Positions 2,399 through 6,518 of a DNA stretch of 15,465 nt are shown here, in pieces (position 1 is the stretch's first letter; each line of letters starts with the position of its first letter). The DNA is taken from sequence record NC_001338.1; one strand, written 5' to 3'. Below the pieces are notes generated by a model. The model worked only from the letters and a program-made list of their open reading frames with translations, was not told the origin of the DNA and ran no database searches. The position numbers and the translations under genes are program-made.

Positions 2399-3129
2399 TT
2401 TCCGCCCCTCGCTAAATACTCCTTAAAGCTCTGATAGAACCCCTTCAGACTAACCCGTAAGTCTGTTAGGTTCTTCCAGTATTGTAATGGGATTAAGTAA
2501 TAGTAGCTTACTGCATCTCTCTCAAATTTGTCCTTCTTAATCTTTCCTTGCTTTTCTAAGTTGAGTATTTGCAGTGCTGAGATACATTTTAACTTGTCCT
2601 CAGCATCTGAATAGTGTATAAACCAAACCCTCCCCATAACCTCATTCTGCTTTGCAACTTCTACTTTAGTGCTTAATATTGCGTAAACGCTTTCGCCGTA
2701 TCTTTCTTTGCTCTGTTCTTCAGTCCATGAACTTCCCGTAATATCTATCCAAATTAAAGGATAATATTCTGTCTTAGCCTTAACGTATAAAGTCAAATCG
2801 TATTTATCTTGCAGACCGCTATAGTATTGCTCATTTATTACATTAGTTAAAGTCCCCACGCCAGTTGGGCGGATATAAACATCAAAGTCTAACAAACCCT
2901 TAGCCCGCCACTTTGATAAAGAGATTAAGAGCTTTCCAAAAACTAGGTATTCTCGCCCTAAATAAGTTGAAGGGAGGATATAATCCTCAGCTTGATTACC
3001 CCAATACTTTAGCTTAAAATTAGTTTCAGCCATCTCACTCACCATATTGAAACGTGGGCTAGTATGTGAATCAGTACTGATGCTATTGCAAATAACACAC
3101 TTGCAGTAGCAATTCCTATTACAATCCAT
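2395..3129 (-). CDS. d244: D244, PD-(D/E)xK-fold nuclease-like protein; likely true start 3033 (212 aa)
   Basis: Recognised SSV1 ORF; recalled homolog SSV-RH D212 has a resolvase-like nuclease fold. Met33 (3033) follows GGTGA overlapping the e178 stop. Confidence 0.85.
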   Translation of the reverse strand: MDCNRNCYCKCVICNSISTDSHTSPRFNMVSEMAETNFKLKYWGNQAEDYILPSTYLGREYLVFGKLLISLSKWRAKGLLDFDVYIRPTGVGTLTNVINEQYYSGLQDKYDLTLYVKAKTEYYPLIWIDITGSSWTEEQSKERYGESVYAILSTKVEVAKQNEVMGRVWFIHYSDAEDKLKCISALQILNLEKQGKIKKDKFERDAVSYYYLIPLQYWKNLTDLRVSLKGFYQSFKEYLARGGK

Positions 3130-3575
3130 TTACCATAATCCACCTTAGTTTGTTGGTCAATATACTCGTTGATGATCTTTAGTATTTCTGGCTTTAGTTC
3201 TGATAATGAAAGGAAGACAGAGGCATAAAGTACTAAGGAGGATGTGAACAGATTATCCGCCTTTTCTGAAAGTTTATAAAGCTCATATCTTGCTCTCTCA
3301 TAATCTTCATAATTAATAATTTCATCAAACTTTTCTACTTGCTCTTCATATTCTTTCTTCAGAGAGTAAGGAGTTGTCTTTTCAATTACTCCTAATTTTA
3401 TTAACTTCTTAACAGCTTCCTTAAATCCTTGTTTATTGCTAGCATACGCTAAAGGGTCTTTTCCTTCTTGAGAAGCTCTATAGATAACTATAGCACCATA
3501 AACAATATTTACAATATCGTATGGTAAGGAATACGCACCGATTTGGGCAATATCTTCAACTCTTCTTTGATCCAT
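3039..3575 (-). CDS. e178: E178, helical protein with C-terminal transmembrane helix
   Basis: GGTGA SD at the f93 stop; C-terminal WIVIGIATASVLFAIASVLIHIL. Confidence 0.85.
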   Translation of the reverse strand: MDQRRVEDIAQIGAYSLPYDIVNIVYGAIVIYRASQEGKDPLAYASNKQGFKEAVKKLIKLGVIEKTTPYSLKKEYEEQVEKFDEIINYEDYERARYELYKLSEKADNLFTSSLVLYASVFLSLSELKPEILKIINEYIDQQTKVDYGKWIVIGIATASVLFAIASVLIHILAHVSIW

Positions 3576-4025: not shown

Positions 4026-4316
4026 TTAGGTCACCTTGTTTATTGTTATTTGAAATACGTATCCGTCTTCGTCACATCGAAGTATAATTTTGTATCCATT
4101 ATTAGCATATTCTACGTCAAAGTTCCCACAACAATAATTCGGGTCTTCGGACTCGTTATAGACTTTGCTCCAACCATCTTTTTGTAGTGCCTCTTCTAAG
4201 TAGTCTACTCTGATGAAGCCTTCATCATATTCGTTCAGTACCCTAAAGCTTATACTATCAATGCCTAATACGTCTAATAGCTTCAACAGATCGAATATAG
4301 GAACTTGCACCATCAT
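4026..4316 (-). CDS. e96: E96, unknown function
   Basis: 96-aa ORF packed between d63 and e51. Confidence 0.85.
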   Translation of the reverse strand: MMVQVPIFDLLKLLDVLGIDSISFRVLNEYDEGFIRVDYLEEALQKDGWSKVYNESEDPNYCCGNFDVEYANNGYKIILRCDEDGYVFQITINKVT

Positions 4317-4317
4317 T

Positions 4318-4509
4318 TCAGCTCACCTTAATGAGCTGATATAATTCCGCTTCTATCTTTTGAACTTGGAAGTATGCCTTGCCTAGCTTTTGCTTATCCA
4401 TATTGCCCGTTATTCTATCAATCTTAATCTCGTGGATTAATGATAATAGCTCTCTGACATCCTCATCAAGCATTTCAAATAATTCTTTCTCTAAGACTTC
4501 TTTACTCAT
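4318..4509 (-). CDS. d63: D63 helix-turn-helix hairpin (Rop-like four-helix-bundle dimer)
   Basis: Two amphipathic helices; GGTGA SD 6 nt upstream; fold recalled from the SSV1 structural literature. Confidence 0.9.
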
Positions 4510-4615
4510 TGTTTTTCACCTTAGCAAACTCATCTAACGTTGTTTGTCTCAGTTCTCTTTTCTTTATCAAATAAAATTCCGAATGTCCCTTCTTATTGTT
4601 ATTACTGTACTTCAT
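4502..4615 (-). CDS. 37-aa micro-ORF with PIP-box-like motif (QTTLDEFA); not among the SSV1 ORF names I recall
   Basis: [37 protein letters not shown]; fills the f112-d63 gap, AGTGA SD-like motif 6 nt upstream, 8-nt overlap with the d63 start. Confidence 0.5.
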
Positions 4616-4621
4616 GTCAGT

Positions 4622-4960
4622 TCACTGCTTTGCCTTTATAAATCCTTGATCCGTTTGCTCAAAATTTGCGGGCTGGGCATCAAATATCTTAGCTATATTG
4701 TCTTGTGTTTGCTCTTGTTTTTGTTCTTCTTTCTGCTCTTGCTTAATCCATTTGAACGTTGTCTTTCTGTTTTTGTATTGTACTTCACACTCGTCTGGAT
4801 GTCTTTCGCAAATAGCTTTCAATGCTCTCTGTATGTTATACGCACTCGGGACTGAAATCTCAAATTGAGCTAGTATATCCTCTAACGTTAATTCACCTTT
4901 CTTTTCAAGAATTTTATACATTATTTCCGCCATCTTGTATGAATTTAGAGTTTGTGCCAT
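4622..4960 (-). CDS. f112: F112 winged-helix protein with C-x6-C pair and Q/E-rich tail
   Basis: LTLEDILAQFEISVPSAYNIQRAL HTH; CERHPDEC; first gene after the T5 promoter. Confidence 0.92.
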   Translation of the reverse strand: MAQTLNSYKMAEIMYKILEKKGELTLEDILAQFEISVPSAYNIQRALKAICERHPDECEVQYKNRKTTFKWIKQEQKEEQKQEQTQDNIAKIFDAQPANFEQTDQGFIKAKQ

Positions 4961-4971
4961 ATTCCCATCCC

Positions 4972-5034
4972 ACTCTATCTATACTCTATGTATAAATTAG
5001 TATTTAAGTCTTACTCTATCTATACTCTATCTAT
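4972..5034 (-). promoter_or_regulatory. T5 promoter: TATA box between two tandem 11-bp operator pairs (F55 sites)
   Basis: actctatctat 4972-4982, actctatgtat 4983-4993, minus-strand cttaaata 5001-5008, actctatctat x2 5013-5034. Confidence 0.92.
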
Positions 5035-5796: not shown

Positions 5797-6099
5797 ATGG
5801 TTTCACCCCAAACCCGAAAAGAAGAAGAGTTATTAGAAAAACAAAATTCAGTTTTTTATTTGTTAACTTTAGGAAGGAAACCGTATGGTTCATATTTGCA
5901 TATAAAAATTGAACTAGACGAAGATGAAAAATTAGAGAAGGAAATCTATGCGGATAACATTAAGCTAGAGAATGAATTAAGACAACTGAAGAGGTTGTAT
6001 GAAGTATATCAGAGCGTAGAGATTGACGATGCTCAGAAAGCAATACAGAAGGAAGCATTACTGACGATAGCGAAAATACTAAGTGTTTTTGACTTCTGA
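5797..6099 (+). CDS. a100: A100, unknown function
   Basis: First ORF after the T6 promoter; charged helical protein. Confidence 0.88.
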
Positions 6100-6100
6100 G

Positions 6101-6518
6101 GAGGCTGAGGGGCAATGAAGGCTGAGGAAACAATCGTGGAACAGATTCAGGACATAATTCAAAAACTTCGCTATTATACAGGAAGATCAAATAGACATTT
6201 CAAGATGATTAGAAACTATTATGAGGAGTGTATAATAATAGTAGACGCTGAGGAGTTTATACAAGAAAATAACACTCTAAGCATTACTGTATATTCTGAG
6301 GATCTTATATATTATACTGTTGATATCCCGCTGAATTTCATTAAACATGTATTCGTATCCGCTTCGATTGATCAGCTCAATGATCAGCTTCAGCTAAAAT
6401 ATAATGAGGGTCTGATTAGAGTTTCTCTTACTTTGAACGATGACTTATGTGAGAAACTGAGAAGCTCATACTGCGGTGATATTACATTCTTTAATGAGGC
6501 TGAGGGGCAATGAAGGCT
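6101..6518 (+). repeat. 23-bp perfect direct repeat (gaggctgaggggcaatgaaggct) at 6101-6123 and 6496-6518
   Basis: Read directly; each copy holds an SD-like motif and the codons M-K-A. Confidence 0.95.
6115..6513 (+). CDS. a132: A132, unknown function
   Basis: SD-like gaggggc; ATGA overlap with c80. Confidence 0.85.

Follow-up and report, generated by a model that had tools for sequence, protein, structure and literature searches.

A very probable 37-codon gene between F-112 and D-63 of the archaeal virus SSV1, with a conserved PIP-like motif

The gap between the F-112 and D-63 genes of virus SSV1 contains an unannotated open reading frame of 37 aa (positions 4502–4615, minus strand), with an ATG at 4615–4613 and a TAA stop codon at 4504–4502. 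Comparison of nucleotide and peptide sequences between viruses indicates that this is very probably a real, translated gene. The peptide is likely to act in trans through a conserved motif. PCNA is a candidate partner, held at somewhat less than even confidence. The best hypothesis, a tentative one drawn from motif similarity, is that the peptide acts in trans by docking on the PCNA of the host, probably on the PCNA1 subunit. The window, i.e., the whole stretch of DNA analyzed, is the SSV1 genome of 15465 bp and is identical to X07234 / NC_001338. SSV1 is the founding model of archaeal virology and its gene list, which comprises 35 proteins in a 2022 review (PMC9608457), had been treated as complete.

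The upstream neighbor, F-112 (positions 4622–4960, minus strand), encodes a winged-helix protein (PF09645) and is the first gene of early transcript T5, with the transcription start site at 4976. D-63 (positions 4318–4509, minus strand) is the downstream neighbor. Nothing is annotated between the two in either SSV1 GenBank record, and the record of SSeV likewise has no annotation of the small gene. As this case shows, ORFs of 28–40 codons are systematically missing from archaeal virus annotations. The interval 4502–4624 given in the original prediction does contain the ORF, but it also takes in the F-112 stop codon and two spacer codons. Other features that had been described are present. The ORF is in frame with F-112, the minus strand reading ...AAG CAG TGA ACT GAC ATG with the TGA and two codons in between. 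An SD-like AGTGA (positions 4622–4626, minus strand) precedes the ATG with a 6-nt spacer and overlaps the F-112 stop codon TGA (4624–4622). The spacing is the same as in the other T5 genes D-63, E-96, E-51 and E-178, which have AGGTGA at 5–6 nt. At the 3' end, the D-63 start codon overlaps the stop codon of the small ORF in an 8-nt segment, ATGAGTAA (positions 4502–4509, minus strand), a geometry of translational coupling. The SD of D-63, AGGTGA (positions 4516–4521, minus strand), is embedded in codons K32-V33-K34 of the small ORF.

The SSV1 ORF taken alone is not significant, since 8% of the shuffled gap sequences retain a fully open frame; 39 sense codons have a probability of 0.077 at this composition. 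Significance comes only from the comparison with other viruses.

Stand-alone homologs of 28–37 aa are found in SSeV, SPV1 (gp20), SPV2 (gp20) and SPV3, plus two metagenomic variants. The SSV1 peptide is linked by tblastn to SSeV and SPV3. Two profile searches give E values of 5e-17 and 2e-18 for SSV1, 1.7e-12 and 1.8e-11 for SPV1, and 7.6e-9 and 9e-10 for SPV2. SPV1 gp20 (YP_009497867, 34 aa) and SPV2 gp20 (YP_010084270, 30 aa), annotated as hypothetical proteins in the Portogloboviridae, are true homologs with significant similarity over the whole peptide. Members of the family have an invariant ELRQTxLDEF, a basic run before it (KKR, KKKK(EI), RRKKK, RRKKKK or RKR) and a stop codon 2–8 residues after it. 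Each member also has an SD at 6–7 nt; those of the homologs are GGTGA in SSeV, AGGAGGT in SPV1 and SPV2, and GAGGTG in SPV3. The peptides of SSV1 and SSeV both start with MKYS. The SSV1 peptide and the two gp20 proteins have the basic patch, motif core, small size and an SD of their own in common, but the gp20 proteins belong to another virus family and virion type, have a TTG start and differ in the N-terminal half (KKQTYDYYML). SPV1 gp20 follows a phrog_11638 gene and, as in SSV1, overlaps the next gene by 8 nt, whereas in SPV2 gp20 just two residues follow FA, and no gene is coupled downstream. The literature searched contains no published function for SPV1 or SPV2 gp20, no transcript-, ribosome- or peptide-level evidence for the small ORF, no mention of it, and no report linking SSV1, SPV1 or portogloboviruses to PCNA.

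The pattern of substitutions is that of a protein-coding sequence. The ELRQTxLDEF core is invariant in the alignments, and in the ten codons of the core the synonymous sites are saturated (pS 0.6–1.4) vs. a pN of 0–0.14, with Sd of 4–7.5 vs. Nd of 0–3.5. There are seven synonymous and no non-synonymous differences between the cores of SSV1 and SPV1, and four and none, respectively, between those of SPV1 and SPV2. All indels across the family (27 nt, 3 nt and 3 nt) are in frame. A micropeptide was one of the options first offered for this ORF, and it is this option that gains from the near absence of non-synonymous change, the in-frame indels, and the stand-alone homologs with their own SDs in four other viruses.

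The distribution of the gene is patchy. Neither a small ORF nor the motif is present near the D-63 homologs of 16 other fuselloviruses and bicaudavirus-like viruses; in most of these neighborhoods a phrog_11638-type gene abuts D-63 at the same GGTGAACTGA-ATG junction. The small gene is missing from most fuselloviruses (SSV2-6, SSV10, SSV19/20 and the Kamchatka isolates) and is thus accessory. The tblastn comparison proposed at the outset for other fuselloviruses yields SSeV. At the DNA level, similarity to the region is confined to SSV1, SSeV and two Kamchatka SSVs and is mostly over D-63. In the favored reading, the small gene behaves as a mobile cassette that is exchanged between Fuselloviridae and Portogloboviridae and is inserted exactly at the conserved SD-ATG junction ahead of D-63.

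The motif is directly preceded by the basic patch K18-K19-R20 (positions 4556–4564, minus strand), where all members have a basic run. The PIP-like core E21-L-R-Q-T-T-L-D-E-F30 (positions 4526–4555, minus strand) consists of columns that are invariant in three family alignments, and A31 (positions 4523–4525, minus strand) is at PIP position 8. QTTLDEFA thus represents residues 24–31, following the basic patch as originally described. In the canonical PIP box, Q-x-x-[L/I/M]-x-x-[F/Y/W]-[F/Y/W], positions 1, 4 and 7 correspond to Q24, L27 and F30, all three of which are invariant. Position 8 is not aromatic, being Ala in SSV1, SSeV, SPV1 and SPV2 and Val in SPV3, so the motif is a degenerate, PIP-like one rather than a canonical box. 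The set of invariant residues coincides with the motif plus its flanks, E-L-R-Q-T-x-L-D-E-F; E21, L22 and E29 are invariant yet unaccounted for by the PIP consensus. A relaxed PIP pattern is expected at about 8e-4 per residue, and the pattern [KR]-Q-[ST]-x-L-[DE]-x-[FWY] at about 5e-7 per position with SSV1 amino acid frequencies. Among the other SSV1 ORFs of at least 45 aa, none has a relaxed PIP near a terminus. A segment in the N-terminal half, EFYLIKK, was considered as an APIM-type motif and rejected; the leading basic residue is absent and the segment is deleted in SSeV.

The closest known motif is the PIP of Saccharolobus solfataricus FEN1 (PDB 2IZO), 339-QTGLDRWF-COOH, which follows Arg338 and in which Thr340, Leu342 and Asp343 contact PCNA1. 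The viral motif shares R, Q, T, L, D and the first aromatic with this PIP and with the archaeal consensus PIP peptide KTTQSTLDSFFK (QSTLDSFF, PDB 1RXM), i.e., R-Q-T-x-L-D-x-aromatic in the same register. Both the FEN1 PIP and the viral motif are preceded by a basic residue and lie in an unstructured C-terminal tail, at its end or close to it. However, F346 of FEN1 fills its own hydrophobic pocket in PCNA1, where the viral peptides have Ala or Val, and the viral motif is followed by 2–8 residues and is attached to no enzyme. Comparison with these known PIPs strengthens the match first proposed, but not at the second aromatic, which is absent in every member. This aromatic is also absent in the PIP of A. 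fulgidus RNase HII, where the preceding Arg compensates, and haloarchaeal polymerases are a further archaeal precedent. In the FEN1 and Lig1 PIPs of S. solfataricus, mutation of aromatic residues abolishes PCNA binding; therefore the affinity of the viral motif for PCNA could be low.

In the AF2 model most of the peptide is disordered; the exceptions are ELRQTT, which is extended, and residues 27–34, which form a helix, and pLDDT is highest at residues 21–30. PIP peptides have this geometry, in which the segment containing the Gln is extended and leads into a short 3-10 helix. The motif is in an exposed, unstructured terminal setting in this model and ends 7 residues from the C-terminus.

Similar motifs occur in marine viruses. 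An IMG/VR scan for RQTxLDEF[AV] reveals a family of about 100–113 aa in which the longest invariant block is RQTTL[D/F]EF, and a separate 76-aa ORF with RQTKLDEFA. Both are within PolB / PD-(D/E)XK / XPF(ERCC4) replication modules on marine viral contigs, one of which also has a clamp-loader-like gene. The AF2 model of the marine family places the motif across a strand end and a one-turn helix, at the start of a flexible loop between strands 2 and 3, with pLDDT below 50 from residue 52. Foldseek with the model of the 102-aa marine protein shows no significant match. The marine parallel is circumstantial; it was found via the motif itself, and the replication context is an a posteriori observation. 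The non-family matches in two motif scans come from about six unrelated families, and a rough estimate is several chance matches per scan.

Other searches return the family and little else. A strict motif scan of metagenome and genome collections gives one SPV3-like contig (L020) as the only real match; the 16 genome matches to the strict motif are all bacterial or other chance matches, with none from Sulfolobales. Searches of a plasmid collection by tblastn reveal nothing, and the peptide family has no meaningful match in sequence searches of Pfam, PHROG and PDB. A profile search of 1.84 billion cluster representatives yields only the family itself and one low-complexity match. No longer protein containing the segment is detectable among these representatives, in a search where a 10–14-residue motif alone would miss significance and fusions could therefore escape notice.

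The strongest alternative, possible but unlikely, is that the ORF encodes a real trans-acting micropeptide with a partner other than PCNA, e.g., a host replication, repair, transcription or cell-cycle factor or a defence protein, and that the resemblance to a PIP is coincidental. Purifying selection and disorder show a constrained short linear motif and not its partner; with neither a Pfam or PHROG assignment nor relatives among the 1.84 billion representatives, nothing can be transferred by homology. The missing second aromatic and the invariance of E21, L22 and E29 outside PIP positions are consistent with this alternative. Against it, the match with the FEN1 and consensus PIPs includes R, Q, T, L, D and the aromatic, all in the correct register, the stricter pattern is rarely expected by chance, and the basic flank and near-C-terminal position are typical of archaeal PIPs. 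A near-identical motif also recurs in replication modules of unrelated viruses. A shared host target is likelier than a viral one because the five viruses have few genes in common. If the motif does bind another partner, the peptide is still a bait for a host factor targeted by two virus families.

The small ORF is very probably an early gene that belongs to the polycistronic T5 mRNA, has its own ATG and weak SD for translation and is coupled to D-63 via the 8-nt overlap. The product, modelled as intrinsically disordered, would be a micropeptide whose sole conserved feature is one short linear motif near the C-terminus. In the PCNA hypothesis, Q24, L27 and F30 are predicted to insert into the client-binding pocket of PCNA, the host sliding clamp. 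The PCNA1 subunit would be the most probable target, since it is the FEN1 PIP that the motif most resembles, and R23 may act in the role of the Arg338 'polar cap' of FEN1. Given that there is no second conserved domain, the simplest consequence would be competitive occupation of the pocket, as with the p21 peptide or TIP, and host clients, e.g., FEN1 and Dpo4, would be displaced or time-shared in the early UV-induced phase. Alternatively, the peptide might have a recruiting role on PCNA via its basic, DNA-friendly N-terminal half. SSV1 encodes no polymerase, primase or clamp; fusellovirus genome replication relies on cellular machinery (PMC9608457). Points against the hypothesis are the absence of the gene from most fuselloviruses and the general tolerance of T5 genes to disruption (PMC6080066). 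The small gene provides a testable lead on how the polymerase-less SSV1 recruits the host replisome. A more specific proposal, doubtful in this full form, is a stand-alone viral 'PIP plug', a FEN1-tail mimic of 28–37 residues that would be encoded by a mobile early gene, swapped between the unrelated families Fuselloviridae and Portogloboviridae, and is predicted to seize or block one specific subunit, PCNA1, of the heterotrimeric host clamp. If this reading is true, the marine RQTTL[D/F]EF motif, whose viruses have replisomes of archaeal type, would turn it into a general viral signature of clamp hijacking.

Three known systems are relevant to such a role. The motif of p21(Cip1) is short, disordered and basic-flanked, of the Q-T-S-[M/L]-x-x-F type, and acts purely via occupation of the PIP pocket. 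The p21(Cip1) peptide competes with FEN1 for PCNA in eukaryotes. The p21 peptide differs from the viral one in its complete FY pair, its long IDCL-binding tail and its place within a larger cellular regulator. TIP is a 64-aa PCNA inhibitor of Thermococcales that blocks the stimulation of PolB and FEN1 and is non-essential (Li et al. 2014; PMC4929162). TIP is likewise small and comes from archaea; it binds PCNA, as is predicted for the viral peptide, and has a possible N-terminal PIP. TIP differs in having a folded PH-like half, in being twice as long and in its restriction to Euryarchaeota with homotrimeric PCNA. Among the 1.84 billion representatives the profile search gives no TIP match, and the viral peptide has no folded half, so its likeness to TIP would be functional and is hypothetical only. 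In SIRV2, a crenarchaeal virus without a polymerase, viral proteins reportedly recruit host PCNA, contacting subunits of the heterotrimeric Sulfolobus PCNA. These proteins are larger and folded, have no recognised canonical PIP and show no homology to the SSV1 peptide.

Less probable by far than a trans-acting product is a cis-acting leader or translational-coupling device, which would deliver ribosomes to the downstream gene or regulate that delivery by a nascent-peptide effect in the exit tunnel. The 8-nt start/stop overlap is kept in four of the five viruses, ATGAGTAA of SSV1 being replaced by ATGACTGA in SSeV, ATGAGTGA in SPV1 and ATGGCTAG in SPV3. In these three viruses, as in SSV1, the SD of the downstream gene (AGGTGA or AGGTTGAG) is located inside the peptide tail, which explains a part of the tail conservation. 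The conserved block is 8–17 residues before the stop codon, where it would occupy the exit tunnel at termination. However, the genes downstream are unrelated: SSV1 and SSeV have D-63 in this place, SPV1 a gene for an 84-aa protein and SPV3 one for an 87-aa protein. SPV2 has lost its downstream gene, and the overlap is absent, yet the motif is intact, with only synonymous differences from SPV1 and a peptide end of ...LDEFAKK; this argues for a function independent of the neighboring gene. In most SSVs, D-63 homologs are expressed straight from the same SD-ATG junction without a leader ORF.

It is very unlikely that the peptide is a decayed remnant of a helix-turn-helix (XRE-like) regulator. A 17-residue stretch resembles the first helices, and there is a weak match (E = 0.17) to a 69-aa ENA protein (P0005) of XRE-like appearance. 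However, Pfam HTH models match no member even at E ≤ 1, and all five viral members stop 2–8 residues past the motif, too early for a second HTH helix. Nor would a remnant show saturated synonymous and zero non-synonymous change across two virus families.

Two further origins had been suggested for the ORF, readthrough from F-112 by TGA suppression or the splitting of an ancestral F-112-type gene of which it would be the C-terminal half, and either is now highly improbable. In SSV1 only TGA ACT GAC separates the small ORF from F-112 in the same frame, but such a placement has a prior of one in three. The upstream genes and frames differ elsewhere. In SSeV, SPV1 and SPV2 the upstream gene is of the phrog_11638 type, with the peptide in the +1 frame in SSeV and in the -1 frame in SPV1 and SPV2, and in SPV3 the peptide gene is the first in the operon with no upstream gene on that strand. 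The MKYS start is kept between SSV1 and SSeV, each with an SD. Longer C-termini, suggested at the outset as a feature to look for in F-112 homologs, are not present in SSV19, SSV20 and ATV viruses, whose homologs align only to residues 2–70 and have no such tail.

Equally remote is the possibility that there is no gene and that the frame is open by chance, the conservation being that of a non-coding element, e.g., an RNA structure, internal promoter or recombination site. The frequency of open frames among the gap shuffles, the lack of the ORF in the SSV1 reference annotations and a TATA-like TTTATAAA 19 nt upstream of the ATG are compatible with this; a scan of the region for bacterial-type promoters and terminators, a method not applicable to archaea, reveals nothing. 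An RNA element is rejected, as the folding z-score is 0.52, no covariation is found, and the only Rfam match is a sub-threshold snoRNA outside the ORF. Read in the frame of the ORF, nearly every substitution in the core is synonymous, and the lengths of the family indels are divisible by three. The SPV1 and SPV2 homologs are annotated genes, and gene finders call the ORF independently in several assemblies, including the chromosome of the host S. shibatae B12 (CP077717) and assemblies from Logan.

The window matches SSV1 exactly (X07234 / NC_001338, 15,465 bp). The small ORF of SSV1 has 37 codons and is on the minus strand (ATG at positions 4615–4613, TAA at 4504–4502). It lies between F-112 (4960..4622, minus strand) and D-63 (4509..4318, minus strand), both of which belong to early transcript T5 (mapped start 4976 in the SSV1 annotation). 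The SSV1 reference records have no annotated feature in this gap. A check of the sequence confirms the ORF as originally described, with an AGTGA Shine-Dalgarno-like motif 6 nt upstream of the ATG, a stop that overlaps the D-63 start (within ATGAGTAA) and the same frame as F-112, from which it is separated by one TGA and two codons (AAG CAG TGA ACT GAC ATG on the minus strand). Other T5 genes have AGGTGA 5–6 nt ahead of the ATG, thus AGTGA is one mismatch from the operon norm, and its spacing is normal. A run of 39 sense codons has a probability of 0.077 at the base composition of the gap, at least one frame is open throughout in 8% of shuffled versions of the 112-nt gap, and chance would give a relaxed PCNA-interacting peptide (PIP) pattern roughly every 1200 residues; considered alone, the small ORF means little.

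With the peptide as tblastn query, three further viruses were matched. The fusellovirus SSeV (MN539721) has a 28-codon ORF ahead of its D-63 homolog (positions 1501–1587 of locus L001), with an 8-nt overlap as in SSV1 and GGTGA at 6 nt; it is also without annotation in the GenBank record. As this 28-aa homolog is too short for protein collections, archaeal virus genomes may contain further members that have escaped notice. Sulfolobus polyhedral virus 3 (SPV3) has a 37-codon ORF ending in ...RKRELRQTSLDEFVGEKNG. SPV1 gp20 (34 aa) and SPV2 gp20 (30 aa), annotated only as hypothetical proteins, came from an IMG/VR scan with the back-translated motif and from a profile search over a collection of 5.8 billion proteins, as did SPV3-like variants from Logan and JGI. 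The residues E-L-R-Q-T-x-L-D-E-F are invariant in all members, with a Lys/Arg run before them and just 2–8 residues after. Neither the SSV1 records nor a 2022 review that lists 35 proteins (PMC9608457) includes the gene, and its homologs are nameless hypothetical proteins. NCBI nr and UniRef do contain the exact peptide, because gene callers predict it in the provirus-carrying S. shibatae B12 chromosome (CP077717). The term "overlooked" in the original prediction thus holds for the SSV1 reference records and literature, but not for all databases.

Comparison of the 10-codon core between pairs of members shows 4–7.5 synonymous differences (pS 0.6–1.4, saturated) versus 0–3.5 non-synonymous (pN 0–0.14), and the x position is the sole amino acid change. 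SSV1 and SPV1 differ by seven synonymous and no non-synonymous changes; by arithmetic from codon counts, the chance that all seven are silent is about 2e-5 (random placement, ~22% synonymous sites). All indel lengths are divisible by three, with a 27-nt difference for SSV1 versus SSeV and 3-nt differences for SPV1 versus SPV2 and for SPV3 versus the SPV3-like contig L020. Every member has a Shine-Dalgarno sequence at 6–7 nt, i.e., AGTGA, GGTGA, AGGAGGT (with a TTG start) or GAGGTG. These comparisons indicate that the small ORF is a gene, and its distribution indicates one that moves between virus families.

The viral core is R-Q-T-[T/M/S]-L-D-E-F-[A/V]. The published PIP consensus is Q-x-x-(M/L/I)-x-x-F-(Y/F); PIP peptides form a beta-zipper with the PCNA C-terminus from the segment before the Gln, and a 3-10 turn from L..FF. 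The S. solfataricus (Sso) FEN1 PIP, 339-QTGLDRWF-COOH, binds PCNA1 with Arg338 as a polar cap, Thr340 and Leu342 lining aromatic pockets, and Asp343 in a salt bridge to PCNA1 Lys44. The viral core matches it in register at R, Q, T, L, D and the first aromatic. It also matches the archaeal consensus peptide crystallised on A. fulgidus PCNA, KTTQSTLDSFFK, at Q, T, L, D and the first F, and four of five viral members have the trailing K. However, the viral core lacks the second aromatic, which defines the canonical box, and it is therefore not classed as a canonical PIP box. The PIP of A. fulgidus RNase HII has no second aromatic and relies on a preceding Arg, and haloarchaeal polymerases have a smaller hydrophobic residue in its place. 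PCNA binding is lost, on the other hand, when aromatic residues in the PIPs of Sso FEN1 and Lig1 are mutated (PMC3321178). At SSV1 amino acid frequencies, about 5e-7 matches to [KR]-Q-[ST]-x-L-[DE]-x-[FWY] are expected per position. A relaxed PIP near an end is absent from all other SSV1 ORFs of at least 45 aa, and the only other relaxed matches in SSV1 are four that are internal to C-792. All four, two of them with a double aromatic, are most likely compositional chance in this Tyr-rich protein (C-792/VP4, plus strand).

No relatives of the peptide were found in Pfam, PHROG or PDB, and a complete HMMER search of 1.84 billion cluster representatives returned just the family and one low-complexity match. 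No fold emerges from AlphaFold2 modeling on the family alignment (pTM 0.26). In the model ELRQTT is extended, a single short helix is at residues 27–34, and confidence is highest over residues 21–30 (block mean 83). As modeled, the peptide is disordered and bears one short linear motif.

The small ORF thus combines a place in the early T5 operon, its own initiation signals, strong selection on one motif and predicted disorder. Acting in trans, the motif would dock in the pocket of host PCNA that receives PIPs, and the most likely target subunit would be PCNA1, which serves FEN1, Dpo4 and XPF. Because nothing but a basic flank is conserved beyond the motif, the simplest effect would be competitive occupation of the PIP pocket, similar to that by the p21 peptide and TIP, a PCNA inhibitor of Thermococcales (PMC4929162). 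The effect would be timed after UV induction, when SSV1 must replicate on host machinery (PMC9608457). The whole chain, a trans-acting peptide that docks on host PCNA, probably PCNA1, by competitive pocket occupation, is proposed tentatively from sequence and falls slightly short of an even chance. A tethering role via the basic N-terminal half is equally compatible. The leading rival, the same kind of peptide with a partner other than PCNA, is rather unlikely. Docking on PCNA, if true, would mean a virus peptide consisting solely of a clamp-type motif, where the known kind is PIP-mediated clamp clients and inhibitors; no paper in the literature searched ties SSV1, SSeV or SPV viruses to PCNA. 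The gene is accessory, since most fuselloviruses lack it and disruption of T5 genes is generally tolerated (PMC6080066). The value of the proposal is its testability with existing reagents, i.e., the three PCNA subunits, pocket mutants and a reconstituted Okazaki maturation assay (PMC3321178).

An IMG/VR scan relaxed to RQTxLDEF[A/V], for which we estimate, without a tool figure, several chance matches per scan, found SSV1, SPV1 and about six unrelated families. One is a marine family of ~100–113 aa on at least 12 viral contigs (~10–85 kb), whose longest invariant block is RQTTLDEF (RQTTLFEF in a third subfamily). A separate 76-aa marine ORF has RQTKLDEFA and is directly 3' of PolB. Marine loci with the motif are at 3094–3402 (minus) in contig L061, 8102–8416 (plus) in L071, and 4171–4512 and 5917–6147 (both minus) in L060, with related loci in L062–L068 and L074–L077. 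Both small proteins are within a conserved replication module of a family-B DNA polymerase, a PD-(D/E)XK nuclease, the small protein, a ~361–364-aa protein without assigned function and an ERCC4/XPF-HhH nuclease; one contig has a clamp-loader-like AAA+ gene. From gene content, these appear to be viruses of marine archaea. The AlphaFold2 model of a 102-aa member is alpha-beta-beta-loop-beta-alpha (pTM 0.71), and Foldseek gave no significant match to it. The motif takes in the last part of strand 2 and a one-turn helix (residues 51–54); at residues 52–56 pLDDT falls below 50, and a disordered loop comes next. The best-conserved residues thus extend from where a strand finishes into the beginning of the least ordered region of the model, a hallmark of binding motifs. 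The block is put forward as a candidate clamp-binding motif, located internally in a so far uncharacterised accessory protein of the replisome. The parallel, found by motif search, is circumstantial, a context where a clamp-binding peptide would be expected.

The small ORF is unlikely to be a pure coupling leader for the downstream gene: downstream genes are unrelated among the viruses, and SPV2, which has deleted its own, retains the motif and differs there from SPV1 by silent changes only. The suggestion that the ORF is a readthrough extension of F-112 or part of a split ancestral gene is not borne out. The upstream gene in SSeV, SPV1 and SPV2 is not F-112; it encodes a PHROG 11638 protein of 168–208 aa, a family that includes SSV10 D152. 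Counted from that gene, the peptide frame is +1 in SSeV and -1 in SPV1, and the SPV3 peptide gene is first in its own operon. F-112 homologs of SSV19, SSV20 and two-tailed viruses align only to residues 2–70. An RNA element finds no support, with a folding z-score of 0.52, zero covarying pairs and no Rfam match above threshold.

In most fuselloviruses the junction is ...TTGGTGAACTGA[G/C]ATG, and the ATG directly starts the D-63 homolog. The ATG of the same string, GTGAACTGA[C/G]ATG, is instead the small-ORF start in SSV1 and SSeV, where the small-ORF tail supplies a second Shine-Dalgarno sequence (AAGGTGAAAAA) for D-63. This arrangement suggests that the small ORF is a cassette, gained in these viruses or lost in others precisely at the SD-ATG junction. 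The string is common to the 3' end of SSV1 F-112 (4613–4624), that of the SSeV gp22-type gene (L001 1489–1503) and the junctions of other fusellovirus loci (L004–L009, L051); its first TGA is the F-112 stop codon.

A perfect TATA-like archaeal octamer, TTTATAAA, is in the last F-112 codons (4635–4642, minus strand), 19 nt 5' of the small-ORF ATG. A transcription start ~23–25 nt 3' of it would yield an internal transcript from the small ORF, leaderless or nearly so. The octamer is not conserved in SSeV and so may be chance in AT-rich DNA. F-112 residues 71–112 (4622–4750) form a Q/E/K-rich 42-residue C-terminal tail without counterpart in the homologs; as their matches end at about residue 70, it seems SSV1-specific. 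The PHROG 11638 family (150–208 aa, ending in ...KLVN/RLLN) is common to fuselloviruses and the portogloboviruses SPV1 and SPV2, with genes at L001 993–1499 (SSeV), L010 1356–1982 (SPV1), L048 3390–4004 (SPV2) and L004 737–1195. Its gene is immediately 5' of the small ORF in SSeV, SPV1 and SPV2, the place held by F-112 in SSV1. D152 is essential in SSV10 (PMC6080066). A comparison of SPV2 (L048 4094–4227) with SPV1 (L010 2076–2330) shows that SPV2 has lost an 84-aa gene 3' of the small ORF, which leaves a gap of ~130 nt and shortens the peptide tail to ...LDEFAKK. In SPV3 and L020 the operon headed by the small ORF is rightward, and a run of ATC/ATT triplet repeats is directly 5' of the ORF (L002 1–112; L020 1–70), near the end of the partial linear genome.
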